Assembly (NCBI RefSeq): GCF_036321535.1
Contig: NC_087454.1
Location: 27,032,001-27,096,000, forward strand
DNA: 64,000 nt
Source of the DNA: Camelus dromedarius
Taxonomy: Eukaryota
Direction of reading: 5' to 3'
The notes beneath the pieces were generated by a model that did not search any database, had not been told where the DNA came from, and saw only the letters and a list, made by a program, of their open reading frames with translations. Numbering within the stretch: the first letter of the stretch is position 1; each line of letters starts with the position of its first letter. The position numbers and the translations under genes were made by a program. Positions 7,773 to 50,110 of this stretch are shown one piece after another.

Positions 7773-10700
7773 CTGGCCGGGAGGTGGGCGGTCCGGGGGA
7801 GGTGACAGGAGGAGGGGCACTGCCGCGAGATCCACCCCTCCCCCAGCTCCTCATCCTCCTCCTGTCTGCCTTCCGGGGCAGTCGGGATGGTGGCAAGGCC
7901 CAGGACTTTGAAATCTGAGATTGCCCCAGCTCAAATCTGATATTGCCCTGGCCCAAAGGGTAATCCTCTCCAGGCCTCAGTTTCCTCTTCTTACAGCAGG
8001 GCTTGGATGAGAAGACCTCTAAGTTGGCTTCCAGTTCTGATGTTCTGCAATTGCCTTCTCTATGTCCCCTACTCCAAACACACCCTCCCCTCCCTCTCTC
8101 CCAGGCCACCACATCCGGCCCACCACTAAGGAAGCAGCTGTTCCTAACCACGACTTTTACCATGACCCTCCTCTGCTCAAAAACCTTTCAGAGTCCCTTT
8201 CGACTACTAACCAAGCTCACTCTCCTGATTTTCTGGCTCATCCACCACCTGGCCTTGCCCTGTTTTTTCTGACCTTTTCTCCCTGAGCCGTCCCTCCTCA
8301 GGCCTATCCCTTTCCCACCTTAAACCATCAGACCCACGATCACCTCTGCTACCCCCAAACAGAAAGGCTGATCACCCTCTTCCTCACCACCTGTTCCTGA
8401 AGCCTTTCTAATTCCCACCTCCTAGGTGGAGACCATTCTGCACTCCTCAGTTTGGACTTCTGGGCATAGCTCCCGCAAGTCTTTATTATTCATTTTTTAA
8501 AATTGAGATACATAGTTGACCCTTGAACAACACCACTTTGAACTACATGGGTCCACTCATATGCAGATTTTTTTCAGGAGTAAATAGTACATTCCTACCC
8601 TGTCCCTGGTGGTTGAATCTGCAGATGGGGAATCAGGGATACGGAGGGCCGACTGTAAGTTATACTAGGATTTTTGACAGGATGGAGGGTCACACCTCTA
8701 ATCCCCACGTTGTTCAAGGATCAACTGTAATTGACGTAAGTCTTCATTATTCTTGCTTCGGCCATCCCATGTCCCCGTTTTCAGCTTGCTATGCAATATT
8801 GGACATATACAATAACGTCAAAGGAGCATGTGCCTTGATTTTTTTTAAGCTCTCTATATCCCTTACTAGAGTGTAAGCTGCTAGGTAGGCACTGGGACTA
8901 TGTCTCGTTCATCTTGTATTCCAATGCTTAGCATAGTTTTTCCAGGACATTGTAGGTATTTGATAGATGTTTAATAAATGAGCGGTTTTAAAATCTACCC
9001 TGTTTTCTAGTCTCATCTCCTGGGTGAAGTCCTCTGTGACCCCTGCTGTCACAATCTGAGTTCTGGGGCTTAGCTCAGAACTGGTCTACTGATCTCTCTT
9101 GACAGAGCCCACAGCTGCATTGCCTGCATCATTGCTGTTTATTGAATTAACACATGCAAGGCACACAGCTACATGGTCTACACACTTCATTCTATGGTCT
9201 GCCGTCCTGCCCCTCAGGGCACAGCATGTCAAGCACTCAGTATGTACCAGTGACTTACATGTGATCCAATATCTTTTTGAATATTTACTGAACACCAACC
9301 ATGAGCCAGGCATCATTCTAGGTACCGAGAATACCGTGATAAGCAGAAAGATTTCTAAAGCCTTCCTGTGGAGTCCCTCTCACTTCTCCTGCTCTGCTCC
9401 CCTGGCCTTTTCCTCTCTCACCTGCCACGTCCTCTCCTCTTTGTAGCCATGAGAACGAGGACTGCTCGGCCCTAACCAATGGGATCATTGTCCTAAGGAG
9501 ATCAGCCCTGTTCTGAGGAGTGGTGGGGGTGGGGGGGAGATTGGCCATTCCCTGACTTTTAAGTCCCTCCCTTATCTGTCGTCCAGTCTCCATGGGTCCC
9601 TCCAAGGGGTCCTGAGAACCCCACCCCAGTCCACCTTCCGCTCCCATGTTCAGACCTCACCCCTCTTACCGGATTTTCATACCGCAGAGCCCCAGGTGGG
9701 AGGCCAGTCGGCGCCAATCGTTGCCTGTGATGCTGTTGGGCTCCAGCAACATCTGCAGCCGCTCAAAGAGCTCTGGGGGCAGCCTGCGGGGGAGAAAGGG
9801 TGCTCTTGGAGGGGAGGATCAAGAGACCCAGTCTGGTTCCAGACACACCTCAATGCTGTGCTCGCCCTGCAGGCATCCCCCAGGCAGCAGCCCAAGCAAC
9901 CCCCACCTCACCTATTGCATGGGGGTGGCTGGGTGACAGGGGGTGGCGCTGTCCAGGATTCCTCCTCTGATGCTTGAAATCTGAGGATTTCCATGTATTT
10001 GGTCTCCAAACCCTGAGCCGACAGAGGGGCAGGGAAACATTTAGGGATTGTATGACATCCCTCTGAAGGAGCTGGGGCACCCACCTCCAGTCCCCATGTC
10101 TCTCCTTCAGCCTGTCACCCAGAGCCACTTAACCAGGAGACACAGCCCCACCCCACCAGCACCCTCTACCCTCTGCTTCCCTGACTCCAGAACCTTCTCA
10201 CTTAAGTTTGCTCACTGAGCTCTTGGGGACCTGGGACGTGAAGACCAAACAAAGTACATCCCAAGACACTAAGAGAAGTCCTGGGTGGGGTCATGGGCAG
10301 GGGGAGGTCATCCAATAACAGAGACTGAACTTGGGCATACATGCCCACTTCTTCCATTCTTCCTCTCCTTGGCTCCTCCTCCCTAAGTGATACCTCAAGG
10401 AGTATCTGCCTCCTCCCCAATAAGATGCCACCATGTCTCCCCAAAGATTCTCCAGTCCTGACTTCTTCATACCTTCCCTCAGGAGAGCTGAGTATCTAAA
10501 TCCCATTCTACCCACTCAAGACCCCTTCCTGTTTACTCTCCACCTTAAGATATATAGCACCATCTCTCAGATGTAGACCGTCAGTCCAAAAAGAAACCAC
10601 ATCCAGGTGGGGAGAAAGGGTTACTCTAGGGTTTGGTTCTTTTACCCTCCTGCTAGATTCATCCATGGATAGACAGGAGTCAGGAATGCTGAGTAACTTG

Positions 10701-13700
10701 GAGGCCAGGAGGTCTCTGCCCTGGAAAAATGCCCTCTTCCCTTGCTTGATTATGTGCCTAGAGCCATACTTCCTGGGCACCAGACCCTTGCCCACTTTGC
10801 CCAGAACACCCCCAGGCTCTGCCCTTCCTCTGCCCCTCAGCTCCAACTCACATCCTGGAAGGTGTGCATGGTGACGATGATCTCATTGGTCAGTGCCGAG
10901 CAGTCTTCGTTCTCACTGGCTGCAAAGAGAAGATGTAGCAGGTGAGAGAGGAAAAGTCCCCGGGGAGGAGAGCAGGAGAGCAAAAGGGACCCCACAGTAA
11001 GACTGGAAATCTGAAGCAGCTGTGCAGGCCACCCCGGCTTCCTCACTGCGAAGATCTGCCGTGGCCCCTTGCCTTTAAGAGAGGGTCTGCGGGCACGGCT
11101 GAGTGAGGAGCTGCGGGGTTCCAGGGTGACCGGGAGCAGAGAGGAGAGGGCAGCAGGTGGATGCGAGGCTCCTGGACTACCTGCTTTTCTGCGGAAGCAG
11201 AAGGAGCGGAAGGGGCACTTTCCATGCCAGATGTGCAGATGGGGGACCAGCTGGCAACTGCTGTCGTCCACATTCTCCCAGCCTGGGGAGGGGCAGAGAG
11301 CAGAGGGCCTCAGAGAGCGGGGCCTTCCACGAGGGTTTAAGGAGGCCACTGTGTGGCAGGCGCTGTGCAGGGCGCTGTGGGGAGGGCCGGGGAGGGAGCA
11401 AAGGCCGGAGGGCGACTCAAGTGGATGGGAGCCCCCAGAGCCTGGGGGGGACCCCTGAGCGGTCTTCCTTCTACCAACACACACTGCCCCCAACACACAG
11501 CACACAGACCCCCACCCCTCCACCCTCCACTCCAACCCCCACCCTCCCATCTACTACCCCCAGAAGCAGCCACACATGTGTTCCCATGTCCTCAGGCACA
11601 CAAACACCCCGACCCCATCGTCAATTCCTGTAGCCAACCCACAACACAAGGAGGGCAGAAAAGACTGGGCCTCCTCCTCTGACACCAGCTCCATCAGGAT
11701 GGGACAACAGAAGCCTCCCCTCCCCTCCCTGACCCTGTGGGAGCCACACCTCTCCTCCCACCTCCCATCCACGTCACCTACCCTCCTACGGAGGGACTGG
11801 TGCTGAGTGGGCAACAGAGGGAGGAAGTGGGCATAAGCCTGGGGCTCTGGGAGGCACAGCAGGAGCCAGAGGCCCCCTTGAAGCTGCTGTCAACCCAGGA
11901 TTCTCGAAAAGCAACTTGGAGTTCCCAGATTCCCACCTCAGGAGAGGTCCAGACCCCCTCCTCCAGTGGGATCCTGTTGCCCTGCCCCCCGGGCCTGCCT
12001 CCCTCACCCTCGGAGATGTATTTGAGTTTCAGGCACTGGTCCCCTTGGGCCCCGGTGAAATCGAAGAGCTGGCAGGGCCCACGCAGGCGCCCGCCGTGCG
12101 GCTGCTCGTTGGTCACAGCCCACTGCAGGGCACAGGGCGTGTTGTTGAGGAAGTAGACGCGCAGCTGCAGGTGGGACTGCCCCGGAGCCAGAGGCGAGCA
12201 GAACACGGCCAGCTGCAGCCACTTGCGGGCTTCCCGGCCCACCGGCGCCTCCAGCACGCAGGTGTAGAGGCTGCGGAGAGAGGCGGTGGCAGGGACCATG
12301 CACAGTGCCTGAGGGAGAGGCTGGGACACCAGCCCACCTGCCACCAAGCTCCCACTGCACCAGGGGCCTCTGTGGAGGCCTCCAAGGGGATGAAGAGAAC
12401 ATTCCAGGGTGTGTGTAGGGAAGGCCTGGGGCGGAGGGGTCAGCTAAGGGGACAGAAAGTGAGTCATGTCACAGTGACCGTCACTGAGTAGGGAAAAGAG
12501 CCAGTGTGGGAAAGAGGGAAGCTAGTCTCAGGGCTGCCATGCTTGGGAGGGGTCCCACACATGGCCCTGCTCTGGTCAGTGGGTGGCAAGGGGACTGGGA
12601 GGCAGAAGGGTCTAAGTTTCTAGAAAGACAGAACTAAGGACAGACGTGAGATGGGACGGAGTCAGAGAACTGGAGGGGGCAGACTGCCCTAGTCAGTTTG
12701 GGGATAGTCTTGGACTGGGGCACAGGGAAGAGACAATCTTAGGAACAGAGGTAGAGATGGGACAGGCCCCCTCTAGACAGAGGACTCTGGGTAGGCAGAG
12801 GGGACCACAGTAAGGTGCGCAGTCCTGGACAGGGTTGGACAAGGTAAGCTGTTGTAGACACTAGGACAGAGGGACTGGGGAAGGACACGGGGATAAGGTA
12901 TTTACAGGCCATCATGGACAGATAAAGGGGCCACCCCTACAGAGAGGTGAGGGTGAGGCCAGCAGAGAAAGGAGGCAGGAAGCACAGGCCGATGGGCAGG
13001 TGCCTACCTGAAGTGGGAGAGGAGGATGCGACATTCATCCCGGGAGGTGTGGTCTCCTGGCCGCCCCAGGGGCTTCCAGGCCTTGGCGTCCAGCAGGGTC
13101 GTGTTGCTGCTGTAGGTGCGGGCGTGGCTGGGTTGCTGGGCACAGTGCTTGAACGTGAGGGTGCAGGGCTTCAGGAAGGAGGCCCCATGGGGGCCACACG
13201 CCACCACGGGGCTCACCAGCCCCTGGGCTCGGGACAATGACGGGGCGTCTGACAGATCCCACACCAGGATCAGTGACACGCGCTCCTGGCGTCCCACAGA
13301 CACAGCACCTGGGGAGGGGGCGAGCTGAGATGGGCCTGGCAAGCAGATACACCCTACCCCAGAAGACGCCGGGCCAGAGTGGGAGAGGAGGTGGGGCAGG
13401 AGCCCAGGAGAGACGGTGCCCAGGGGAGAAGACACACGGGGAGGCAGCACGGAAGGAGAGGAAGGTGACTCTGACTGCCTTGTGATGTCACCCTGAGCAA
13501 GTTGTCTCCTTCCTCCCAGGGCTGCTGCCAGCTCACTAGAACAAGGCCCTTTACTTCCACCTGCCAGGAAGCTGTCATAAACATTTGTAATATATCAACC
13601 TTTAGAGTCAAGAAAGTCAAACTAAACATATAAACAATTTTCAAAATTATGACAATGTCTCTGAATGGTGCTCCCTTGGAGTTGGTGCCCTTGTCCAATG

Positions 13701-14132
13701 TGCAACGTGAACAACTGTACCCTGAGAAGGGAGCTGGGTGCTGTTACCTGGTGGGATAAGCAGGGAAATGCCCGTATCCTGGAGCATCAGGCAGCCGCCT
13801 CGGTGATCCACCTCTCGAGCCGAAAACACCAGCAGCTTGTGCATCAGCTGGCGGATGACGGTCTGGCCTTGGGTGGGTGTGTGCAGTTCCTGGTAGAAGG
13901 CGGCCACCTCCTGCAGCGTAGCTGGTGGGAACTGCCTGGAGGACTCATTTTCTGGCAGGGGAGTGGGATGGGACACTGGTTCCTCCAGGCTCTCCAGCTT
14001 CCAGCAGGCACCCAGCAGCCGGCGAGGACAGCGCCATCGAAGGCACTGGGCCAGAAGGACAGCACTGGCCACCGGAACCCCCACCAGCAGTAGGAACTGG
14101 GCGGGATGGAGGGAACTCTCATGGGAGCACAT
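7550..14132 (-). CDS. UNC5CL: UNC5C-like protein (ZU5 and death domain), 518 aa; complement(join(13748..14132,13008..13308,12008..12270,11181..11282,10852..10919,9912..10012,9670..9783,7550..7772))
   Basis: Eight exons with GT-AG boundaries and consistent phases sum to 1557 nt (518 aa plus TGA). The translation runs [27 protein letters not shown]...[10 protein letters not shown] (ZU5)...[12 protein letters not shown] (death domain)...ELDEKF and matches recalled mammalian UNC5CL. Confidence 0.96.
8513..8727. mobile_element. TcMar-Tigger MITE (Tigger2/MER28-like) in the last UNC5CL intron
   Basis: TIRs TAGTTGACCCTTGAACAAC / GTTGTTCAAGGATCAACTG, followed by TA. Confidence 0.8.
9670..9783 (-). 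CDS. UNC5CL: UNC5CL coding exon 7 ([38 protein letters not shown]), death domain
   Basis: Acceptor CCGCAG|; donor CCG|GTAAG; 114 nt. Confidence 0.95.
9912..10012 (-). CDS. UNC5CL: UNC5CL coding exon 6 ([10 protein letters not shown]...PPCNR)
   Basis: Acceptor GCTCAG|; donor TAG|GTGAG; 101 nt. Confidence 0.94.
10852..10919 (-). CDS. UNC5CL: UNC5CL coding exon 5 ([23 protein letters not shown])
   Basis: Acceptor TTGCAG|; donor GAT|GTGAGT; 68 nt. Confidence 0.95.
11181..11282 (-). CDS. UNC5CL: UNC5CL coding exon 4 ([10 protein letters not shown]...FRRKA)
   Basis: Acceptor CCCCAG|; donor GCAG|GTAGT; 102 nt. Confidence 0.95.
12008..12270 (-). CDS. UNC5CL: UNC5CL coding exon 3 ([10 protein letters not shown]...KYISEG)
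   Basis: Acceptor CCGCAG|; donor GAGG|GTGAG; 263 nt. Confidence 0.95.
13008..13308 (-). CDS. UNC5CL: UNC5CL coding exon 2 ([11 protein letters not shown]...LSHF), ZU5 domain
   Basis: Acceptor CCCCAG|GT; donor CAG|GTAGG; 301 nt. Confidence 0.95.
13748..14132 (-). CDS. UNC5CL: UNC5CL coding exon 1 (MCSHESS...LLIPPG), includes the N-terminal hydrophobic segment
   Basis: ATG at 14132-14130; donor CCAG|GTAAC at 13747. Confidence 0.95.
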
Positions 14133-14419
14133 CCGCCTGGTCACTTGATGCTGCCAGATCCCCTGCACCCCTGTGCCAGCAGAGGCCAAGGGCTCAGGGG
14201 AAAAAAGGAGTCAGTGCCAGATGAGCCTTTTCAAGGTCACGGAGGTGAGACTTGGCTTCCAAAGTGGCTGCAATGAGGGAGCAAATTGTCTTCATCTGCA
14301 TGAACCCCACATGCCCCGGTCAGATCAATTCCTTTAACAGAACTTCACCTATCTCTCTCTTCCTCAAGAACCTGCCATGGCTCCCCATGACCTAGTACAT
14401 CAAATTAATCTCCCATGAG

Positions 14420-18870: not shown

Positions 18871-21009
18871 ACTTGTCACCATGTTCTGACCTCCTGCAGC
18901 AGAGGAGCCATGGTGAACTCCCCCAGCCGGGCAGTGATCATCTGTCCTAGAAAATAAGTAACTGCTCCTGCTTTCATCTTAGTTAATGATTCCCTGGCCT
19001 CCTGCCCTGGACTAAAACCCCCTCCCCTCTGCTACCTTTCCTGGGAGGATGGGATAAATGCCTCCTAGGGGTGCCCAGGTCCCCAAAGTGGAGAGATGGG
19101 GCAAAGGAATAGTGGAGAGCCGCCAACCTGGGGAGGAGACCTCCTGTCTAAAGGACAAGCGAGGAAGAGGCACTCAGAACTTTGATAGGGACGAAGAGGG
19201 GAGGTGTTAGTCTTTGCTGGACAGAGCTCTTTCTGAGTCATACAGAAGGCGTTCTCCTCTGAGTCATGAGCTCCCAGGGGTTTGTGAAACATCTGTCAAG
19301 CTCGATTCCAAGCCTGGAAGGGCCATGCCAACTACAGATTATAACCAGGGGCTGTGTCCATGTCTCATGAGCTCATTTCTGAAGCTGGTGCTTGCCTCAC
19401 CTGGGGACAGCCCCTGCTACAGGAAGATTCTGGGGAAATCTGAGGGTCCTCACCACCCCCATGGACACAAAGCTGTTCATGGGATGCAGAGACCACAGAC
19501 ATCAGTAGCCTGGCAGCCTGGGGCTGAACTGTCTCAGGAGGTCCGGGTCTTGCAGTGCCAAAGCCTCAACTGTTCCATTAAGGGGGGGGGGGGCCTCCAG
19601 AGGCTAGGTCCAACAGATCAGGAGACCCCTGTTGAAAGGAACCCTTCAGGGCCATGCAATCTGAACTCCCCAGCCAATGTCACCACCCTTGTCACTGGAG
19701 AAAGGCAGCCCAGCTGGGAGCCCCACTCCACCCCTCCCCCCGCCTCCCACCCTCTGCCTTCCACATCATATGTCAGCGGGCACTCAGTCTGGGAGATGTG
19801 CTGCCTGAGGTAAGGGGAACACAGGCCTGGGAATAAATAAGGGGACACCAGGAGTGAAGAAGAACAAGAAGAAAGGATTGGAGCAAGGAGGGGGGCCCTC
19901 CGACACTGGATAGAAAAAAAGAAAACAGACAGAGAGACAGGAAGGCAGAAAGTGAAGACATGGATGGTGAAGAGCAGAGAAAGATAAATAGAAAGGTGTC
20001 CAGGCCGGCAGGCTGGTCAGCCCTGTCCCTAGAACCTCCAAGACATGTTCCTGCATCCTTGACAAGAAAGGATGGAGTGGGCAGTCACTCCAGAACACTG
20101 AGAATAATCAATCACATCAATCATGGGCAGGAGGCTGAAATACCACAGGCAAAGGAGAAGCATGATATTGGGTGGGGGCCTTGGTTGGAGGAGGGTCTGT
20201 GCATCACCCCACATGCGAATGACTTAACAAACCAAAATGCAAATGAACATGGCAGCATTTTCATCAGAGACCAGGCAGTTATTTCCTTGAGAAGTCAGGC
20301 CACAAGAAATCTGGGTGCTCATGTAGGTGGCCCTGACCCTCTGTAAGTGGAAAGATGGAAGGGGAACCTCCCCCAGCCCTGGAGAGATAGATGAGAGCTT
20401 CAGAGAAAGGCACCTACAGTGTCACTCTGCTGAGTTTGAATTTGGGCAGGTGCTCAGGTGGGGTGGGCTCCTGTAGTCTGCCAGTCTGGTACAGCAACAT
20501 AAGCCAGGGCAGATGGGCTGGCCCATTCTGGACCAAAAAAGACTCCCAGGGATCTCTGGCTCCTGCCTTCCAAACGTGGTTCTTCCAGGTTGGTTATGGC
20601 AACTTGGTTGAATTCAGTCTAAGACACTGTCCCATCGAGGGCCTGCTATGTACCTGGCCAAGTGCCACCTGCTGTGGGAGGCAGAAAAGACAGGCATAGC
20701 TGGACCTGAGATCCAGGAGTCAGACACACGCTGGGGAAGAGGAGTCTTCACTAAGAAGCAGGTATCAATACTGGACAGTATACTCGGTGCCAAATGAGTG
20801 GTGTGGAGAAAAGAAGTGCATGGAAAACAGAAAAGGCGGTGTGGGCTCAGAGGAGCAGGATGGGAGCTGGCCCAACACAGCCTCTAGGACTAGACCTCCT
20901 ACAAAGGCTCAGGTAGAAGGAGACAGATGGGCAGACACAGGGAAAGGACCAGGGGAAGGCTACCATTAGTGTGTTCTCTGCCTCCCCAGATTGTGCCTCC
21001 TTGAGGAGA

Positions 21010-21182
21010 ATGTGGCCTCAAGGGGTCATCTTCATGGCCCTGGCACTCCTAGGGCCCACCCTGGTCAGGCTGTTCACCCATCATTGGACGTCTGGTTGGT
21101 GTAACAGCCTGAAGTAGCTGCCCTGGTGCCCATCCCACAAGGTTTTGTTGCTTGTGTGGACAACCATCTACCCTGTCATAGG
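21010..21182 (+). pseudogene. TSPO2: TSPO2 coding exon 1 with a premature TAG at codon 36
   Basis: Acceptor CCTCCCCAG| at 20989; ATG at 21010; ...AAG TAG CTG CCC TGG TGC...; donor GG|GTGAGG at 21183. Confidence 0.88.
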
Positions 21183-21553
21183 GTGAGGACCCATTTCTCA
21201 TGCTATGGGGTGGGAACAAGTCTCCCATCCCTGAACTGCTGCTGCATTCTGACCTCCAAAGGGCTGGTACCTCATCTTGCCTCCTCTGATGTGTCCCCTC
21301 TGTACCTGCCTTGGATTCCAGCCCGTCTTCTTCCACCCTCTCCCAGTCTCTCCATCCCCTCCCCACATCACCAAGCCCACTTCTTCCCACCACTTTCCCC
21401 GCCCCAGCCCTCAAATGAAGCCTAGACCCACTTACCCCTTTTCAGCCCAGGAGGATTACCTCTTGGTAACCAAAATGCCTTACGCCAGAGGGCTTCCTCC
21501 ATTTACCATGGAAACACTCTCTTCTGAGCGTTTCTGCCACCATCTCTCCACAG

Positions 21554-21692
21554 CTATGCCTCCTACCTGGTGTGGAAGGACCTGGGAGGGGGCTTCGAGC
21601 GGGCCCTGGCCTTGCCTCTAGGCCTCTCTGCTGCGCAGCTCGCCATCAGCTGGGTTGTCCTGATTCTCTTCCTAGCCCACTCCCTGGGTCTG
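21554..21692 (+). pseudogene. TSPO2: TSPO2 coding exon 2 with a non-canonical donor (GA instead of GT)
   Basis: Acceptor CTCCACAG|; translation YASYLVWKDLGGGFERALALPLGLSAAQLAISWVVLILFLAHSLGL, followed by GAAAGT. Confidence 0.87.
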
Positions 21693-21929
21693 GAAAGTCA
21701 CAAGGGCTCAGCACTGGAATAGCGTGGGAAATGGGGGGCTGCCAGGACCCAGAAGCAGATGGAATGGCAGGTCAATCGGGTGCAGGCAGTAACGGCTGGG
21801 CAGACTTCTCTGAGCCCCTGTGGTGTGCACAGAGTGCCAGGAACTGGACTCGCTGGGTCCAGGATGCTGCAGAAAGGTCAAGGGCCACTTCCCAGGGCAG
21901 CCTGCCTGACTGCCCTGCCCTCTGCCCAG

Positions 21930-22130
21930 GCCCTGCCACACCTGCTGCTGCTCTTCGGGCTGGTGGTGAGCATGGCACTGATCTGGCACCCCACCAACAA
22001 ACTGGCTGCCCTGCTCCCGCTGCCCTACCTGGCCTGGCTCACTGTGATCACATCCATCACCTATCACCTGTGAAGGGACAGCCTTTGTCCAGACCACCAG
22101 CCTCGGCCCATGGGGGAGAAGAGTAACTGA
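21930..22130 (+). pseudogene. TSPO2: TSPO2 coding exon 3 with a premature TGA in the CRAC motif
   Basis: Acceptor CTGCCCAG|; translation ALPHLLLLFGLVVSMALIWHPTNKLAALLPLPYLAWLTVITSITYHL*RDSLCPDHQPRPMGEKSN*. Confidence 0.88.
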
Positions 22131-22294
22131 GGCACGGGGGCTGGGGAGCAGGGGAAGCGGCCAGGGATTGACAAGTCCCCGCAGGTGACTCGTCCCATTG
22201 TGGCCACTGTCCTGGGCCCTCCACTGCCACTATCCATTAGAATTCAGAGACATGGGGAAAAGGGAGGAGACTTATTTTATACTTAATATAAATT

Positions 22295-22300
22295 AATAAA
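22295..22300 (+). terminator. TSPO2: TSPO2 polyadenylation signal AATAAA (second copy at 22338-22343)
   Basis: AATAAA 165 nt after the ancestral stop, in an AT-rich tract. Confidence 0.6.
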
Positions 22301-22559
22301 TTCTGTATTAATAAGCATTAATTTAATTGTATAAATGAATAAAATCCTGTTAATGAACTTTGAGGGTATGATGTCCAGGGTGGCAGGGCCGGAATGAGTG
22401 TGTCTGCATGTGTGTGAGTGTGCACACGTGAATGAAGGTGTGAATGCACGTATTCGGAGGGCGGGCGCACCATCTCCACTCACATGCCCTCCCAAACCTG
22501 ACCCCGAAGTTTAGGACTTAGATTACTGATTACCTGAAAAACAAAATGTATTTGAAAAG

Positions 22560-22920
22560 TTACATAAAAGGAAAACAGAAAAGCAAAGTCAAAAAGGATA
22601 CCAATTACAGGTGTCAAGTTATATATTTTATACTATGTATTATATGTAAATACAAATATATATTATGTATTATATATCAAAATATGTTATATTAATTCTG
22701 TTTAATTCATCTATTTTATTAATTCAGTACATTAATTATACTAATAACTATACAATAATACATGATATGGTTATATATGTTATACCAGTACCTTATGTCA
22801 TTATCTGATACATATGAATGTATAAGTAAGATTATAGATCATTTTTTATTTTTGTTTTCATATACTCATACTATTGGGTTTTTGCTTCAATTCATTATTA
22901 TTATTATACGAAAAAATGTT
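22560..22920. repeat. Very AT-rich low-complexity tract, probably a decayed L1 3' fragment
   Basis: TATA-rich run such as TATATATTTTATACTATGTATTATATGTAAATACAAATATATATTATG. Confidence 0.5.
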
Positions 22921-23229
22921 GAAAAAAAAAAGAGATGTAGTGATTTCAGTAGGAGTGTCTTGTCCACCCTTCTCTCTTTCTAAACCTTCTCATTGGCTTT
23001 TTTCTTTTCGTCTCTTCCTGCCTCTTGTTTCCTACTCCTCTTGTTTCAAAGCCCGGATGGTGGCAAGGAGTGACTGCCACAGGGCTCCCTCCCCAAATCC
23101 TAAAACAAGGCCAGCTGGAAGGCCAGGCGCCTTGCGGCAAGAGCTTTTAAAAATACCGACCAGACTCTCTAGGGATGGGCCTGGGCCTTGGTGTTTTTAA
23201 AACTCCCAGGACCTCCTCATGTGCAGCCC

Positions 23230-23405
23230 ACCTGAGACCACTGCTGAGCGTGTCCCAGAGCCAGCCAGGAGCCTATTAAAAATGTGTATTCCTTGGACCC
23301 CACCCCAGATTCTGAATCAGAACTTTTGGGGTGGGCTCCATACATTTTTAGATTTAACAAGCTCCCAGCACTTCTGTCACTTGCGCTCACCAAAATTTGA
23401 GAGCT
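23230..23405. mobile_element. MER5-family hAT MITE
   Basis: ATTCCTTGGACCCCACCCCAGATTCTGAATCAGAAC...TTTAACAAGCTCCCAG. Confidence 0.65.
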
Positions 23406-23829
23406 CCAGGCACGGATGGTCCCTCAGGGCCCATTTTGCTTTGACAGCCTTTGGTTCTGTGAGCTGAGTTCTGCGCCTAGAACCAACTGTGCCCTCTCAG
23501 GTGGGGGCCAAGGACCACACAGAGGGGAACAGCCAGAGGACACCATCATTTGAGAAGGAGACTGGCTCTTCCTGGAGCTCGCCAAGGGAGGACTAGCGAG
23601 AAGGAATCTGCATTGTTCCCGCCTCCACAAAGGGTGTGCTCTGCCCAGCAGGGCAGATCGGTCACCTGCCTTCCTGGAGGGCACACACAGTGCCCCACCC
23701 ACCTTTGTGTCCCCAGCCCCAGTGCAGCACAGGGCACAGAGGTGTTCACACATCTTTGTTGATCAAATGATTGACTGAATAAATGAACACACTGTTCTAT
23801 TAAAGGAAAGTGCTGACCAGCAGCCCACT

Positions 23830-30702: not shown

Positions 30703-30833
30703 ATGGCCCAGAAAGAAGAGGCCGCTGCGGCCGCGGCGCCTGCCTCCCAGAATGGTGAGGATCTGGAGAACCTGGAGGACCCCGAGAAGCTGAAGGAGCT
30801 GATTGAGCTGCCGCCCTTTGAGATCGTCACAGG
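30703..30833 (+). CDS. APOBEC2: APOBEC2 coding exon 1
   Basis: Kozak CCATGG; donor GG|GTGAG at 30834. Confidence 0.96.
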
Positions 30834-33800
30834 GTGAGAGCCCGGTGTGGGCTGGGCTTCTCCTCCCTAGAAGAGCACCGGCTGGGGACAGGTTGGGGGC
30901 ACCGAGGACGATAATCGGAGGGGTCAGGGTCTCCGTCCTGCAGTGTGAGAGTGCGCAGCGGGGGCTGCAGGGGACCCAGCAGCAAACTCTCTTGCTTCTA
31001 AGTGACACCTTGGACCCTCTAACAGGGGAAGTAGGAGGAGCTCCGCGGAGGTGAGGGCCCAGAGAAGGAAATCACCCCTGAGGTTTCATGGTTTGGGGGC
31101 GTCCATCAGCTGCCTCTCTGAGTAGATGTTGTATAGTTCTAGGGAATTTGGTCAGAACACCGGATGCCACTGGCACGTGTCAGTGTGGCCCCAAAGTACC
31201 TCTTCCCCCAGCTTCTCTCTCTGCTTCTGAGTGGGCCTCTCCTCTACCTGTATGTTTCTCTTTCTTTAGAGCTTCTCTCTGGAATAGAAGATCCTAAGAC
31301 AGGAAAGATAGATTCATCCTTTCCCAAGCCAGGGTGAGAAGAGGTTTTCTCCCTTGCTGAATCTTTTCTAAGTCTCCCCAGGGACTATGCACACCTGCCC
31401 CCAGGGAAGCAGAGACGTTACAGGCCGGGTAGCACAGGCTAGGCCCCACAGCTCCCAGGCAGAGGAGTTCCAAAGCCCTCAGCCACAACCCGGAGGAACC
31501 AGGACCCAGAGCAAAGAGTCTCGAGGCTCCAAACGGGGGCTGCACAGAGGGTCCCCTTGTCTTGTCCAGATCAGGCCATTTCCAGGAAGAAAAAAAGCTG
31601 TCTTTTTCCTTTTCCCTCTCTGTCCCTTTAGCAGAAGATTCGGGTAAGTTCCTAAACAAAGAACAAGAAGGGAATATGTGGGGCCTGAGGATTCCTTCCT
31701 GGGAGTCTCCAGCAATGCCCACAGGCAGAAGAGGGGCTACACTAAGAGAAATTTCAGGAAGAACAGGGGCATGATGCCTTCAAGGGGCAGAAGGAGGCCT
31801 GGGAGGCAATTTGGACTTGCTGTTTGAAGCTGGGAAAGTGAATTTCTAGCCCTGGCTGCAGTTTTTCATTCGTAACATGAGGAAGTTACACTAGTTGATC
31901 CCGAAGATCCCTTCCAGCTCAGATATGTTCCGGTTTCTAAGAGAACCTGAGGGAAAGGCATCTTAGTTCCTGAGGCAAGAGTTCAGGGAAGAGCCCTTGA
32001 ACTTGCATTCGCCCATGCCCAACCAAGTAATGTCACCCTCATCCCAGGATTAAGGGACCAATGGGACACAGATTAATTTAGACGCAGGGAGGGCCTAGGG
32101 CCACCAGGCCAGGAGAGTCCTTGATTCCAGTGTCCTCCTCTCTATGGAAGGAGATCCTTTTCCTAAGAGCTAAGCATGCTGGTCCCTGCTGCCCTTGGTC
32201 GCACACACACAGGCACATGCACACCCACTCTGCGCAGTGCTGTGATCTTCCCAGCACAGGGGTGGGGTAAGTCCAGAACAGAATTAAGAGTATGTCTGTT
32301 GAGTTGAACATGCTTTGTGGTCTCAGGGTGGTGGGTTTTGAAAGATTAAATCCCCTGATGTCACTTCCACTTGTCTGGGGCTTTATAGTCCCGGCACACT
32401 CACATGCCTGAGCTCCTTCAAGCCACTGCACAAGGCGAGGAGGGGTGCCCTATCATCCCCACTCCACAGATGGGGAACTGAGAGTCAGGGAAATGGAGTG
32501 ACTGGTCCAAGAGCACAGAACCAGTAAGTGGCAGGTCTTCTGACTCTAGCCAAGCGTCCTTACCACTTGTCTCTTACTCATGCTGGGTCCCCGATTTCTG
32601 AGACAGAGCTCCGCCTGTCTCCATCTGCAAAGTTGTGAGGCTCAGTGGCTTCCCTGACCCAAGGCTCAGAAAAAGAGGCAGAAGTGGGGCCACTTTCCAG
32701 TGCTCTGAGAACAGTTCAAGAGGGAAGTGGGGCCCTGAGTGTTTCCCGGCCACAGGCAACAGCTGTGGAGACTGGTCTCCTGGGCCCCTCCGGGTAAACA
32801 GACTGCTTAAAATAGCGCAGAGGTGCGGCTGTGTCTGTGCCGGGGCAGGATGAGGGAACCCCATCCCTCTCCTTCACTCTCCAGGTGCCCTGGCGTCAAA
32901 AGAGCCAGCAGAGCCAGGACTCCCACAGGGGTGGGTCTAGCAACACTGCCCCTACGATTCTGGCCCCAAACTAGAACAGCAGGTGGCTTTTCAGGAAACA
33001 GTCTTAGGTGAGGAATAAGGAGAGAGATGTCTGCTTGTTGTGATTCTGGTTTGAACAGGGCAGTCGGGATAGAAAGCAGACCTCAGAACACTAAAAATAA
33101 TGGGGTGGAAATTGCTCGAGAAAGGTCTATAACTGTGGTGTGCCCAGGCCCGCTCAAGTTGGCTGAGTTGTTTGGGTGCATTTCTTACCAACTGTGTTCA
33201 GTGACTTTATGCTGCTTTCTTGAAATCTCCACAATGGGGGTGTTTACAGAAATCAGCAAATNNNNNNNNNNNNNNNNNNNNNNNNNNNNNNNNNNNNNNN
33301 NNNNNNNNNNNNNNNNNNNNNNNNNNNNNNNNNNNNNNNNNNNNNNNNNNNNNNNNNNNNNNNNNNNNNNNNNNNNNNNNNNNNNNNNNNNNNNNNNNNN
33401 NNNNNNNNNNNNNNNNNNTAAACCAGCACACCACTGAAAGAGAGAACCCTCTGAACATGAACGGGAGAGCAGAGGAGGGATCAGGTTTAGGAGTGCTTGA
33501 GGGGTAAGATTTGGGGTCCAGAGAAGGCATCACCCATCAGTTCTAGGTTTAATTTCTCAAGTGTCAACCATTGTTCAAAATCTGAGAGGTTGGATTACTC
33601 AACCTATCTTTCCGATGAGGAAACCAAGCCTCAGAGGGAGTAATAATTTGCCCAGAGCTAGCAGATGGAGTAGGGTGTGAACGCCAAGACTGTCCGATCC
33701 AAATCACTAGGCTGCATCGAAAAAAACCATAAAGAGAAGTCTTGTCATATGCAACAAATATTTTCTGAATAGGAGTCATTTATTTGCTGCCCGTTCCCCC

Positions 33801-36800
33801 CACAAGTATTTAACCTCCATGAGGACAGGGACTCTGCCTTTTAGCTGCTTTCTCCCTGGAGAACAGCACCAAGAATAGTACCCAGCTCTTAACTGATACT
33901 AAACAAATATTTGTTGAATAAATAAGTGAACAACTAATTGAGAACCTAGTGTGTGGTAGGCTCTCTGCCAGGCACTTGAAGAAGGAATTAATTGGGGGAG
34001 GGCTTCTCGAGGAGAGAAGTTCAGGATATATGAAGATCCGGCAGCGCTAGGCTTAGAGGAGAATTCCACTGGTTCGCACCTGCCTCTGAACTCAGCATGC
34101 TTTAGGGAAGCTCTGGAGCACCGGAAGAGGCTATCTCTCCATCTCTCCATCCCAGTGATGAGTGACTGCAGCTCTGCCTGGCAGCACCCCTTGCTGTGTC
34201 TTTCTCTCTAGTTATGTTGTGTGTGATTTTACATAAAGCTGAACCTACTATCAAAGGGGTTATTCTGGAACAGAGATGAATCGCACAGGCAGTGACTCTC
34301 CTTTCAACCACTTCTTTAGCCACCAGTAGTTTACTCCACCCACGTGAGGAACAGTGAGGGTTCAGAGAGGAAGGGCTGCGCAAGGAGTGAGGGGCCTCTG
34401 ACACCATTCTTAATGCTCACTAGATTCAAGGGTGCTGAGAAGGTTTGTGCCACTGACTCTGGCCACCCTGGCCTCCACTGAGGGTTGGGGGAAGGTCAAA
34501 TCTCACATGCACAGATGGTAATTCCCAGGGAAACAGGGTGGCCTCGGGGCTTGCCACAGGCAGAATCGCATCCAGAACCGCCAATCAGGAGCCAGTAGCC
34601 CATCAAAACCCTCCTTAGCTCTAGCAAGTCAGGCTGTTAGAACTCTCTGCTTCTCTCCACTCCTTCTATGCCCACTCCTCAGCATCCACTTTGAAAAGTA
34701 GTCTGACAAACGGAAAAGGAAACCGAAACTGGCAATTCTGCCCCTTTCGAGCAGGTCACAAAAGGTCTCAGTGAGCAAAGCGGAAACAAGTCAACACTCA
34801 ATTACCTGTGAGTAGATTTTCCACTCTATGGATTATTTTGTAGCAAATGTTTAATCTCCAAGTAGTTTTCACTGCCCTCCACGTTGCTTCCTTTCACTGT
34901 CTAGATTTATGCTTAAGAAATGCAAATGCTTTTCAACGTGAAAGTGAGAAAAATATATATATTACATCAACTCACATCCTTTCTCCATCAAGCTGGCCAT
35001 CGTCCCCACCATGAGGACTCTCGGTTTCCTGCCTAGAGAATTGCAATGCCCAGAAACCTGGGTCTAAGCAGATGAAGTGTGAATGTTTGCAGAAAGTATG
35101 AGGAAGTGGTGCTTGAAGAGGTGCTTGGGAGCGGGTAGGAATCATGCTGGTGGTTTCTGTGCCTGAAGAGGTGACTGAGTCCAGGTGAAGACTACCAACA
35201 GCATCTCTCTCCTACCCACCACTCCAACACACACCCACACACCACTTTAGCAGTAAAATATCTTCTGGGGTTGAGTGTAAAGGGCTGTAAGTAACCATAG
35301 TACTCAGGCATACCATGCCACCAGAAAAATAAAATATGTTTGTGATTATCTACAAGATCACTGTCACTATTTCCTTCCTTCCACTAGTGGGCATAATAGC
35401 GTTGACATATTTTGTGATTCTACAATATCACCTAAGATGGCCACGCTGTCTAGCTCTCCGGAGAAATTTCAGACCTCTACCACCCCTGTTCTCCTGGTGC
35501 CCCTCCAGGGCCTGGCTGTTTCAGTCTGTGGGAGCCCCAGAGGGCCTCATTCAACCTTTATGCTCCTAGAAGACCAAGGATCCCACTGCAAAGCCAAGCA
35601 AGCTCAGCCTCTGAGCACGCCCAAGGAGGGGCGTGGTCTGGCAAAAGGCCCTGAAGAGCAAAAAAGGCTTTCAGCAAGAAGGGTAAATAAGCTCTGTGTG
35701 TCTCCGTAGTGGGGGAAAAAAAACAGTCCAGGAAGTAAAGATATCATTTAGCAACTGGCCAGAGCTCTCAAGTGGTCTGGTGAGGTGAGTTTAAGTGGAG
35801 AGAGCTCAGTGTGAGTTCCCTGCAGGGATCAAAATAGGAGAGGGTACTCATCAGGCCAGCCATTCTCCCCAAATGTTAAGTAAACAATAAACACATCCAA
35901 CCAGGGACAGAGGGACTTAGAGAGCTAAATATAGTCCCTGAAGGAATCCCAGGGCTGGGTCCCCAAACACATCCATCTCCACAGTGGAACCTTAATCTGA
36001 CAGCAAGGGACACAGGAACCTGGGTAGAGAAAATCTGGTGATGGGGGAGGGGAGGACTGCAGGGAAACAGCTCAAGTTTACTCAGCGCTTTGGCACCTGC
36101 TGCTTATCCCTAAGAAGCCAAGGCCCTGGGATACCAGGGATCCCCCTGCAGCCCAAAGAGTTGGGTGACCTCCCCGGGGGAAGGGAAGGGGTGTAAGGAA
36201 GCAAGAGCACAGTTACTGGTTACCATAGGGCACCTTCTGGGGCAACCACAGGGATGATTACATTTTTAAAAGAAAACATTCAGCCTCTCCTTCTGACCTT
36301 TTCAATCTCTCCCGTCATAGCCTCTTCATTCTCTTTGGCCTTGAAACTTGGCACAAATCTTCCTTATTTTAGAAAAACAAGCACATACTCATAAAGAGAA
36401 AAAGTGTTCAGCTCTGATGCTCTCTCTAGCCTCTCTCCTTTTTTCTCACCTTCTTATTACTACTAAATTTTTCAAAACACCTGGCCTTTTTCTACTGCTT
36501 TCATTTCCTAATCGTCCATCTCCCCTTAAAGCCACTGGATATATTCATCACCAAGTCTGGTGTCCTAGGACACCAAGGGAAAAGCCTAAATTTCAGGCTT
36601 TCCCCAGCTTCACTCTGTCTGCCTAAAGCCATCACAGCACTCTGCCGTGGACCTTCATTATACCCTTCTTTACTCAGGAACCTGTAACAATTCTCTACTG
36701 CCTCCTGAATCAAGGCTAAACTTTCAAGAGCCTCCATCATGTGTCCTGCACTCTACGTCTTTATTTTTAGTAGTCTACAACTGTTCTCAGCTGTCTTATT

Positions 36801-38198
36801 TACATCTTCTCTGTCCAGCCAGAATGTAGCTGCTAGGTAATAAGTGTCTGGAGAAGAGAGGCCAAGTCTTTTATGATTTTGAAACGACTCAGTACTATAC
36901 ACACACTAACTCCTTTGAAGGTATCCTTAGGTAGTCTGGCCTCAAAGATAAACATTCTTGGTCACTTATGTGACAACCCTTTCACCTGAGGGAAAAGACA
37001 GACCTGAGAAAGTCATCAGGAGAGCCTGGGACTGCAAGGTTTAGGCCATCCCATGCCTAAGAAGCAGTATACATGAGTGACGAGCAGGAGAAATGAAAGC
37101 ATGAAACCTGCAACATCTTTGTCTTGCTCTGTCTTGAGCATTTTCACATTTGCCGCTTTGCACAATCACTATTTGAACACTGCTTCTCACACCTGGCCAC
37201 ATACTAGAATCATGTGGCGAGTTTTAAAATGCTGATGCCTGGCCCCCTTCAGATGTTCTGATTTCACTGGTTTGGTGTGGGGCCCTGGCACGGACATTTG
37301 TAGAGTCCTCAAGGGGATTCTAATGTACAGCCAGAGTAAAGAGTCACTGATTCAGAAATGTGGGAGTGTGCTGTGTGCTGGGAATGATGGCGGAGTGTTC
37401 GGGGACCCATCCTAATAGGGTGTCCAGGGTGCACACCTCACCCCAAATTCTCTCTTCTCCTTTAGACAAACACTTTTGGATTCTTTTGTGCCTTTCTGTC
37501 ACTGCTGTTAGTGTAGGCAAGGCCTGTCTTAATAGTAAGAGTGAATGTGTCTCCAAGGTACTGATTTTGGAGAGCTACCTACACTAGGCTAGTCCTAGAG
37601 CAAGAATTCATCGTTCTCTCTCCTTCCCTGTGCCTTTGTCTCCCTGACCCACAGGGAGCGGCTGCCGGTCAATTTCTTTAAGTTTCAGTTCCGGAATGTG
37701 GAGTACAGCTCCGGGCGGAACAAGACCTTCCTCTGCTACGTGGTGGAAGCGCAGAGCAAGGGAGGCCAAGTGCAGGCAACACGGGGATACCTAGAGGACG
37801 AGCACGCCGCGGCCCATGCGGAGGAAGCCTTCTTCAACACCATCATGCCAACCTTCGACCCCGCACTGCGGTACATCGTCACCTGGTACGTGTCCTCCAG
37901 CCCCTGCGCGGCCTGCGCTGACCGCATCATCAAAACCCTCAACAAGACCAAGAACCTGCGCCTGCTCATCCTGGTGGGGCGGCTCTTCATGTGGGAGGAG
38001 CCCGAGATCCAGGCGGCTCTGAGGAAGCTGAAGGAGGCAGGCTGCAAGCTGCGCATCATGAAGCCCCAGGACTTCGAGTACGTCTGGCAGAATTTTGTGG
38101 AGCAAGAAGAGGGCGAATCCAAGGCCTTTGAGCCCTGGGAGGACATTCAGGAGAACTTCCTGTACTACGAGGAGAAACTGGCGGACATCCTGAAGTAG
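30703..38198 (+). CDS. APOBEC2: APOBEC2 (muscle cytidine-deaminase-like protein), 224 aa; join(30703..30833,37655..38198)
   Basis: 131 + 544 = 675 nt. Translation MAQKEEAAAAAAPASQNGEDLENLEDPEKLKELIELPPFEIVTG/ERLPVNFFKFQFRNVEYSSGRNKTFLCY...HAEEAFF...SSSPCAACA...LADILK* contains the HxE...PCxxC zinc motif. Confidence 0.97.
32450..32568 (-). mobile_element. MIR SINE
   Basis: ATCCCCACTCCACAGATGGGGAACTGAG. Confidence 0.65.
33262..33418. other. Assembly gap (157 N) in APOBEC2 intron 1
   Basis: Run of N. Confidence 1.
34712..34731 (-). promoter_or_regulatory. ISRE (CAGTTTCGGTTTCCTTTTCC on the minus strand) in APOBEC2 intron 1
   Basis: Exact AGTTTCNNTTTCC consensus plus a third GAAA unit. Confidence 0.55.
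36280..36900 (+). mobile_element. Degraded L2 LINE fragments
   Basis: Pyrimidine-rich L2-like sequence ending CCAGAATGTAGCTGCTAGGTAATAAGTGTCTG; boundaries are approximate. Confidence 0.4.
37180..37350. mobile_element. MER5A-like MITE
   Basis: ACATACTAGAATCA...AAAATGCTGATGCCTGGCCCC...GGATTCTAATGTACAGCCAGAG. Confidence 0.65.
37655..38198 (+). CDS. APOBEC2: APOBEC2 coding exon 2 (deaminase domain); the exon continues to the donor at 38218/38219
   Basis: Acceptor CCCACAG|; TAG at 38196-38198; CAC|GTGAGT 20 nt later. Confidence 0.97.
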
Positions 38199-48079: not shown

Positions 48080-50110
48080 ACCCTATGTTCCGAGGTGGCA
48101 GCGTCCTGCTCGCATTTCGCGCTTTCCTAGAGCGGAAGAAAGGCGGTCCTCAGACACGCCTCCTCCTCTTACCCGCGCCGAGAAAGGCGGATTCAGGACT
48201 GTCTCCTTTTCTCTATAAGCGTTTCCCCGTTGGGTTTGGCCCACAAGCAAAAAGGTGGGACTTAGCCACAGTCCCCTTAAGTCGCAAACAGGGAGTGTAC
48301 GGGCCAGGGGGAGTATAATGCCAGGGAGAGGGAAGGCGGCCTTTCAAGGAAGGCTCACCTCCATCTTTTGAGGGCGAGGAAGGGAAGAAGTCTAGCGAGG
48401 CCTCCCATTCTGTCTCCTACCCTAGGGCGGATCAGCCAGGGCGTAGGGCCTGTCCCGGGGTCCCATGGGAGGGAGCAGGGAGGCTCGTTCAAAGTCCCAA
48501 CATACCGGGGTTACCCTTCACCTGGAAAAGAGTCGGCCGTTAGGAGGTCCCTCCCCGCAAGGAAGGGCTCTGGTAGGTGGGAAGCAGCGGACGAGCCCAG
48601 ATGCAGAGCCAATCCCGCCACGGGTCTTAATTGCACACACCTAAGATGGCCGCCCACCACCCGGGAGCGGGGCGGAAACGAGCCCCTCTAGCTACCTAGC
48701 CAAGCCTGCACTCTTTGGTGATGGCCGCCGAACTTCCGGCGGTAAATTCCGTAGAGTATCCCGCCGCCGCCCGGGCATGCGTAACGAGACAGCCGACAGC
48801 GAGTCGGCTAGAACGGCGCTTGCGCGTTAGCCTTAGGGGTGTGTCTCCAGGGGCCGCATAGAGGCGGGAGTGGGCAGTTGGCAAAAGAGTTAGTTGGCGC
48901 CTGCGTAGTACTATGTTCAGGGCGGTATTTGAGCTAAAGGGCCTGGCGCGTCTAGAAGGCGCCTGCGTATTCCTTCACCAGGGGTGGAATCTAATCAGGA
49001 AAGTGGGCGTGGCTTCGGGCGACGCCTGCGCGGTGCTCCTTCAACTGGGGGTGGGGCGAGCCCAGAGCTCGGGCTAGGGGGCGTGGTCTTGGAAGCGCCT
49101 GCGCAGAGGCAGNNNNNNNNNNNNNNNNNNNNNNNNNNNNNNNNNNNNNNNNNNNNNNNNNNNNNNNNNNNNNNNNNNNNNNNNNNNNNNNNNNNNNNNN
49201 NNNNNNNNNNNNNNNNNNNNNNNNNNNNNNNNNNNNNNNNNNNNNNNNNNNNNNNNNNNNNNNNNNNNNNNNNNNNNNNNNNNNNNNNNNNNNNNNNNNN
49301 NNNNNNNNNNNNNNNNNNNNNNNNNNNNNNNNNNNNNNNNNNNNNNNNNNNNNNNNNNNNNNNNNNNNNNNNNNNNNNNNNNNNNNNNNNNNNNNNNNNN
49401 NNNNCCAGCGTCCTCGGCCCGGAGCCTGCGAGCGCCCGGGGGCACTCCCGACCGAGGCCTGCAGGGGGCCGCCCCGCGCGGTGATGGCGTTCTCGGGAGC
49501 AGGCATTTCGGGGTCCAGACCCTTGCAGAGTGCTGGAGCCAGTTGGGGATGTGTCCCCGTCCCCCTGACCCTTAGGCTCAGGTTCTCAGGCCCCAGGCCT
49601 GGGGGTGGTGGGCTTGCCTCGCTTGAAGGCCCCTATGCTCAGGTATACACACAAGCGGTCCCAGGGCCTCGGCGGTTTCCTCCTGGTCGTTCCGGCCTGA
49701 CGTTTAAGCCCGCCCTTGAACTCAACACGCTCTGGCCCTCGGGACAGGAAGTCTCCCCCTGCAGGGCCCGCGTACCCCACCCCTCCATGAGCGGGTCTGC
49801 AAGCCCCTGCATTGAGAGGGAGGCCTGGGGAAGATGCGCGCCGCGGCCGTAGGGCCCCGCTTCGGCGCGGAGAGGAGCCCTGGCTGCCCCCGCCTCGGTG
49901 CTCTGCGGGCCCGCCCTTGCAGGCCCCCGGATCGGGGGAGGGGGTCCGTTAGTGCGCCTACTCGGGCCGCGCTGCGCCCCTCCTCCCAGCACGTTTGGCC
50001 CAGGTCTCCGGCCCGGCGCCGTTACCACCCCCTTTTGGCTCGTCATTTCCTCTCCTCCCCACCCCGATCTCGGGGCAGAGGCGCACACCTCCGTCTTGGA
50101 GCCCAACCAA
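48080..50110. promoter_or_regulatory. CpG island; OARD1/NFYA bidirectional promoter
   Basis: GC- and CpG-dense sequence between head-to-head genes. Motifs: CCAAT 48609-48613, YY1-like AAGATGGCCG 48643-48652, ETS ACTTCCGG 48732-48739, four NRF1-like GCGCCTGCG motifs 48897-49104. Confidence 0.9.
49113..49404. other. NFYA: Assembly gap (292 N) in the CpG island; probably hides NFYA non-coding exon 1
   Basis: Run of N at the GC-richest point of the island; no recognisable NFYA exon 1 end in the flanks. Confidence 0.75.

Follow-up and report, generated by a model that had tools for sequence, protein, structure and literature searches.

TSPO2 is very probably a fixed unitary pseudogene in camels, and the same gene appears to have been damaged separately in several pecoran ruminants

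Introduction

TSPO2 is among the few erythroid-specific membrane proteins, and it has been proposed to move cholesterol while the red-cell precursor goes through its final divisions. The function of the protein has been shown in mouse and dog (PMC7278357). Tspo2 knockout mice are viable, with a compensated mild anemia, binucleate erythroblasts, and abnormal erythroblast division (Kiatpakdee et al. 2020, PMC7278357). Dogs with mutant TSPO2 are likewise viable and display the HK (high-potassium) red-cell trait, again with a mild phenotype (PMC7278357).

In this study, we analyzed the TSPO2 locus of the dromedary, Camelus dromedarius, which lies in a stretch of 64,000 nucleotides (contig NC_087454.1, positions 27,032,001 to 27,096,000), referred to below as the window. 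The camel gene occupies the same locus as the functional TSPO2 genes of human, mouse, and dog, and it has the same three coding exons in the same phases, with an exon 3 that is 81 to 85% identical to that of other mammals. However, the functional genes encode a protein of five helices, whereas the camel copy contains two nonsense codons, a dead splice donor, a codon deletion, and prolines in helices 4 and 5. The camel thus resembles the HK dogs and the Tspo2 knockout mice as a living mammal in which TSPO2 function appears to be lost. It differs from them in the nature of the alleles, which in the dogs and mice are within-species missense, small in-frame, or engineered changes, whereas in the camel there are multiple lesions, apparently fixed across the genus, in a gene that appears to have drifted in a near-neutral manner. 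An initial annotation of the window had proposed a lineage-specific loss of TSPO2 and a possible link to the small elliptical red cells of camelids. Here, we examine the locus itself, its state in other Camelus sequences and other mammals, and the bearing of the results on both proposals.

Results

Identity and genomic context of the locus. Direct reading and translation of the forward strand from the ATG at 21010 yielded three coding exons of TSPO2 within window positions 21010 to 22130 (Table 1). The donor after exon 1 is intact, with a GT at 21183 in the sequence GTGAGG. Comparison with the Pfam family TspO_MBR (PF03073) gave a match to the exon 3 piece with an E value of 6.4e-9 and 36.1 bits, above the 24-bit cut-off, and the exon 2 piece alone scored 20.8 bits (E value of 3.5e-4), which is below that cut-off. 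The full-length best database matches to exon 3 were all annotated as translocator protein 2, at 72 to 83% identity, and scores were much lower for the TSPO-like proteins found in fish, insects, and molluscs. The top-scoring match in the exon 3 search was a repeat protein of 490 amino acids that aligned via low-complexity sequence, and it was discarded as no relative. The exon boundaries of the camel gene aligned with those of whale, zebra, and pangolin, and the intron phases are conserved.

Table 1. Features of the camel TSPO2 locus and its flanks, in window coordinates
Feature	Position	Strand	Remarks
UNC5CL, part (exons of the UPA and ZU5 domains)	11778-14189	-	Domain matches; upstream synteny anchor
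Upstream exon of GenBank model Cadr_000021881	20648-20761	+	Joined directly to exon 3 in the model, which ends at the premature TGA
TSPO2 coding exon 1	21010-21182	+	Codons 1-57 plus 2 nt; start ATG intact
Lesion 1, in-frame TAG at codon 36	21115-21117	+	Sense codon in the readable comparison species
TSPO2 coding exon 2	21554-21692	+	139 nt, 142 nt expected; AG acceptor intact
Lesion 2, donor after exon 2 is GA instead of GT	21693-21694	+	CTG/GAAAGT (slash marks the exon end)
TSPO2 coding exon 3	21930-22130	+	AG acceptor intact; ancestral stop TGA kept at 22128-22130
Lesion 3, in-frame TGA at codon 152	22071-22073	+	TGG in all seven aligned species
APOBEC2	30703-38198	+	Coding exons 30703-30834 and 37656-38195 plus stop, intact; downstream synteny anchor

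The gene is flanked by UNC5CL upstream and APOBEC2 downstream, with the large exon of APOBEC2 at a distance of 15.6 kb from TSPO2. This interval matches the gene order around TSPO2 in other mammals, including human, UNC5CL-TSPO2-APOBEC2. The retention of introns, together with these flanking genes, indicates that the locus is the TSPO2 ortholog at its ancestral place and neither a processed nor a stray copy; both a processed and a duplicated copy are ruled out by the introns and the synteny. On these comparisons of sequence, the locus is identified as a TSPO2 ortholog, closer to TSPO2 than to TSPO1. The Pfam result, the best matches, and the UNC5CL and APOBEC2 flanks all agree with the identity and ancestral position given in the initial annotation. 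That annotation had also described the neighboring genes as free of lesions, which holds for APOBEC2, as its two coding exons match the annotated dromedary protein at 100% identity. In a database search, the large APOBEC2 exon agreed with the Camelus dromedarius protein at 165 of 166 residues, the one mismatch being a start-codon M set by the tool. Runs of N occur in the window outside the TSPO2 locus, at 33262 to 33418 (157 bases), 49113 to 49404 (292 bases), and 56961 to 57100 (140 bases).

Disabling lesions. Three disabling lesions had been claimed for the gene, namely nonsense codons at positions 36 and 152 and the loss of a splice donor, and all of their coordinates proved correct on direct reading. 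The sites were compared in an alignment of the loci of gray whale, zebra, cattle, ibex, musk deer, fallow deer, and pangolin. At the site of codon 36, the six readable species all have AAG, AGG, or GAG, and the musk deer has a 1-bp deletion there. All six species that still have exon 2 carry a GT donor behind it; cattle have lost the exon. Codon 152/153 is TGG in seven of seven aligned species, and the residue is W in 40 of 40 other mammalian TSPO2 proteins. The premature TGA at this site falls inside the C-terminal L/V-x-Y-x-R/K cholesterol-recognition motif.

Further changes accompany the three lesions. A one-codon in-frame deletion, also claimed earlier, was seen as 3 bp missing between 21668 and 21669, and it accounts for the length of exon 2 being 139 rather than 142 nucleotides. 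Four replacements are unique to the camel at sites that are at least 90% conserved: P12A, Y83S, L108P, and L135P. The last two are the leucine-to-proline changes noted previously, which are real and lie in helices 4 and 5. Exon 3 also carries I127T.

We considered two ways in which the gene might escape these lesions. The next GT after the dead donor, at 21697, lies 4 nucleotides downstream and shifts the frame, so rescue by a nearby cryptic donor was rejected. Read-through or recoding was rejected as well, since it would have to act on two different stop codons and would still leave the dead donor. With two nonsense codons and a destroyed donor, the five-helix TSPO2 protein cannot be made from this locus, and the stops at codons 36 and 152 together with the GA donor mark it as a TSPO2 relic rather than a working member of the family.

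Lesions in other Camelus sequences. The region from 19500 to 23500 of the window was compared with chromosome CM016646.2 of the CamDro3 assembly. The two are 99.9% identical, differing at three sites and one indel in 4 kb, with none of these differences on a lesion, and CamDro3 carries all three lesions. Ten contigs derived from ten separate sequencing runs were also compared. The GA donor and the TGA at codon 152 were present in ten of ten, and the TAG at codon 36 in all seven that reach exon 1. The sample is modest, consisting of 12 Camelus sequences (the window, CamDro3, and the ten run-derived contigs), and all 12 carry every lesion that they cover. Sense codons at 21115 and 22071 and a GT at 21693 had been named in the initial annotation as observations that would refute the loss; CamDro3 and the run contigs show only the lesions wherever they cover these sites, and the loss has in effect withstood that test.

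The Camelus sequences fall into two haplogroups with a divergence of 0.25 to 0.5%, one made up of the window, CamDro3, and two runs, and the other of the remaining eight runs. Fixed differences between the haplogroups occur at 21598, 21615, and 21715, and site 22105 is polymorphic (G/A) inside the dromedary-like haplogroup. All three of the coding differences found between or within haplogroups are nonsynonymous. Our guess is that the haplogroup of eight runs represents the Bactrian camel.

Intact orthologs and the search for a second copy. A search with an intact bat TSPO2 retrieved full-length orthologs from over 40 mammals of most orders, including pig, peccary, and many whales, with no camelid among them. 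A pig cDNA contains a complete TSPO2 frame of 171 codons, and the genomic loci of gray whale, zebra, and pangolin likewise have complete 171-codon frames with normal splice sites. Among 5.8 billion sequences, no full-length camelid TSPO2 protein was found. Neither the exon 3 peptide nor intact TSPO2 queries retrieved a camel-like exon 3 frame extending past codon 152 from databases that take in the annotated dromedary genome and assemblies of camel reads; every camel-like exon 3 frame found there stops at the premature TGA. The exon 3 peptide had two exact matches that end at that stop, one a dromedary gene model of 85 amino acids and the other a frame of 104 amino acids on contigs assembled from raw runs. 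These contigs and their cluster relatives supplied the ten run contigs compared above.

Other camelids were sought through the same collections. Sequence clusters at 90% around the camel exon 3 frame and a neighboring frame contained Camelus variants only, and a homology search that used this exon 3 frame as query returned horse, pig, and other species with no second camelid lineage. The whale, pig, and goat TSPO2 clusters had no camelid member. The cluster listing for APOBEC2 has dromedary as its sole camelid entry. A degenerate DNA pattern for exon 3 found no match in JGI metagenomes.

Selection on the camel branch and age of the loss. The ratio of nonsynonymous to synonymous rates (omega) was estimated on a codon alignment in which stop codons and gaps had been masked, using our own branch model of the Goldman-Yang type. 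With eight taxa, omega was 0.74 on the camel branch, 0.38 on background branches, and 0.25 in ruminants. The camel value differed from that of all other branches at a P value of 0.04 and from the background alone at a P value of 0.10, and it was compatible with an omega of 1 (P = 0.42). With ten taxa, omega was 0.76 for camel and 0.37 for background, with P values of 0.078 for equality of the two and 0.47 for a camel value of 1. The rise over background thus has a P value of 0.04 in models with two omega classes and of 0.08 to 0.10 in models with three or four. An approximate 95% interval for the camel omega is 0.38 to 1.45, and the camel stem has 26 nonsynonymous and 11 synonymous codon changes. 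The initial annotation had proposed shared lesions with a dN/dS near 1 as support for an ancestral loss. Neutrality is not rejected at the estimates of 0.74 to 0.76 (P = 0.42 to 0.47), but the increase over background is weak (P = 0.04 to 0.10). The data, being statistics on 171 codons, are suggestive of TSPO2 having drifted neutrally over a large part of the camel branch.

Two clocks were applied to date the loss. With an assumed camel branch length of about 64 million years (My), based on published artiodactyl timescales, treating the camel omega as a dN/dS mixture would place inactivation about 37 to 40 My ago, with an interval that spans nearly the whole branch. A lesion-count clock would give 13 to 32 My, with a 95% range of 2 to 94 My, varying with the rate used. 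Both clocks are compatible with a loss before the split of Old World and New World camelids, about 17 to 25 My ago, without showing one. We lean modestly toward expecting at least one of the lesions in alpaca and llama as well.

TSPO2 in pecoran ruminants. In cattle (ARS-UCD, GCA_002263795.4, CM008190.2; extracted locus 1699 to 2504), TSPO2 is without exon 2. About 206 bp, equivalent to window positions 21560 to 21765 and containing nearly all of exon 2 and the start of intron 2, are replaced by about 20 bp. The TSPO2 protein models of cattle, yak, and banteng read through this gap, and a 69-amino-acid entry in UniProt is a frameshifted product of exon 1 joined to exon 3. In Capra ibex (GCA_054642885.1; extracted locus 1441 to 2580), exon 2 is thrown out of frame by 5 bp inserted into a run of G, and the donor after exon 1 is GC. 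The goat RefSeq TSPO2 is labeled LOW QUALITY PROTEIN, other goat models follow the shifted frame, and a sheep model skips the part of exon 2 that bears the insertion in ibex. From the sequences of these loci and models, this exon 2 lesion may be common to goats and sheep.

Damage was also found in musk deer and fallow deer. Moschus berezovskii (GCA_022376915.1; extracted locus 8070 to 9260) has ACG in place of the start codon and deletions of 1 bp and 2 bp in exon 1, and the Ensembl model for Moschus moschiferus has the same garbled segment in exon 1. In Dama dama (GCA_048126745.1; extracted locus 1441 to 2551), a single assembly contains at least eight TSPO2 lesions. These include 1-bp and 4-bp deletions in exon 1 followed by a CT donor, a TAG, a TGA, and further deletions in exon 2, and a 1-bp insertion and a 25-bp deletion in exon 3, the latter in the C-terminal tail. 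The NCBI model for this species is a LOW QUALITY fusion of TSPO2 with the first exon of APOBEC2.

In the tail of exon 3, near window positions 22105 to 22112, there is a deletion of 5 bp in cattle and ibex and of 6 bp in musk deer. These deletions may be one old pecoran event in a G-rich segment where the alignment is ambiguous, and they would affect only the tail that follows the cholesterol motif. In the aligned loci, no lesion was common to camel and any of Bos, Capra, Moschus, and Dama, and no clearly disabling lesion was seen in common among these four pecorans. The pecoran stem had an omega of 0.31 and the pecoran crown one of 0.50; the crown value was below 1 (P = 0.006) and no different from background. 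With lesions that do not match and an omega below neutrality, the ruminant events look separate and fairly late. The pecoran and camel genes are alike in being the same gene at the same syntenic place with disabling lesions carried by each genus, and they differ in the lesions themselves.

A possible residual product. The 85-amino-acid dromedary model mentioned above is a GenBank entry, Cadr_000021881, labeled as a hypothetical protein. Its exon 3 part extends from 21930 to 22073. Judged by its structure as a gene model, the entry is probably an annotation artifact built on the relic.

Discussion

We are highly confident that the camel locus is a single-copy ortholog of TSPO2 and a unitary pseudogene that is fixed in Camelus. 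One alternative is that the lesions are errors of a single assembly and that the true gene is intact. Single assemblies can hold base errors, and the window does differ from CamDro3 at three sites and one indel. However, those differences spare the lesions, and every lesion recurs in CamDro3 and in the ten independent contigs wherever they cover it, which excludes assembly error and leaves this explanation a negligible probability. A related alternative is that null alleles are still segregating and that intact alleles exist among camels. The sample of 12 sequences is small enough to leave some room for this, and other sites in the gene are polymorphic, 22105 among them. Against it, all three lesions travel together in each of the sequences, which span two haplogroups separated by fixed differences, and three linked null mutations at high frequency short of fixation would be unlikely. 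We consider segregation very improbable.

The remaining alternatives accept the lesions as real and fixed and would place TSPO2 function elsewhere or give the locus a new one. If the locus were a decayed duplicate, a functional TSPO2 would reside in another part of the camel genome, and our searches for one covered only collections of proteins and read assemblies. Yet this copy keeps its introns within the ancestral UNC5CL-APOBEC2 interval, and the sequence collections contained no camel-like exon 3 frame that continues beyond codon 152, such that a second, working gene is also very hard to credit. It is slightly easier to imagine a remodeled locus that still makes a useful product, either a short C-terminal protein or a regulatory RNA. 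The dromedary GenBank model links the upstream segment at 20648 to 20761 with exon 3, and short products of exon 1 joined to exon 3 are found in the cattle and sheep databases too. The 85-amino-acid product, however, would contain just two of the five helices and would be missing the end of the cholesterol motif, and exon 3 bears L108P, I127T, and L135P in addition to the stop, which is unlike a conserved product. The read-assembled contigs hold the introns and are thus genomic rather than transcripts, and no transcript evidence was seen. A remodeled product is accordingly given little credence, and a fixed unitary pseudogene remains our reading of the camel locus.

On this reading as a fixed pseudogene, the inactivation of TSPO2 would date back millions to tens of millions of years, and camel erythroblasts would mature without the protein. 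The loss could be tolerated because the gene is only mildly required, as the viable knockout mice and mutant dogs indicate. The independent damage in pecorans may reflect a relaxed need for TSPO2 in these artiodactyl lineages. In this respect, the loss proposed as lineage specific in the initial annotation stands only in part: the camel has a loss with three lesions of its own, but Bos, Capra, Moschus, and Dama break TSPO2 too. Pigs, peccary, whales, and almost all of the other mammals sampled retain an intact gene. As read from assemblies, the ruminant lesions look like separate and later events than the one in camels. We narrowly favor repeated, independent losses of TSPO2 among ruminating artiodactyls, in camels and in at least four pecoran genera of three families (Bos, Capra, Moschus, and Dama).

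The proposed link between TSPO2 loss and the small elliptical red cells of camelids fared less well. The red cells of pecoran ruminants are round, and these animals have damaged TSPO2 as well. The ellipsoid camelid cell has been explained by a camelid-specific splice form of 4.1R that hyperstabilizes the membrane skeleton (PMC9926112). The damage in round-celled ruminants and the 4.1R explanation together weaken the link, and the loss of TSPO2 is probably unrelated to the oval shape of camel red cells. If the repeated loss is real, it would suggest that red-cell or lipid physiology has changed in a way common to these lineages, and not that the oval camelid cell is involved. A causal physiological link behind the repeated loss is unlikely.

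No published report of TSPO2 loss in camelids or ruminants was found in the literature searched, and genome-wide catalogues of gene loss or the NCBI pseudogene annotation may well flag the camel gene already. Camel TSPO2 is apparently a new instance of a familiar class, the unitary pseudogene, and its apparent recurrence across ruminating artiodactyls adds to its interest. There is a practical consequence for annotation. The dromedary hypothetical protein is a model placed on a relic, and the same applies to the odd TSPO2 models of cattle, yak, banteng, goat, sheep, musk deer, and fallow deer.

That a genus, and probably several lineages of artiodactyls, live normally without TSPO2 amounts to a natural experiment on how the protein is replaced, and it raises the question of whether the loss of TSPO2 leaves a signature in the membrane, cholesterol, or cation content of the red cell. 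If repeated loss is correct, these artiodactyls would be natural knockouts, and late erythroblast maturation would be able to dispense with TSPO2-mediated cholesterol handling.
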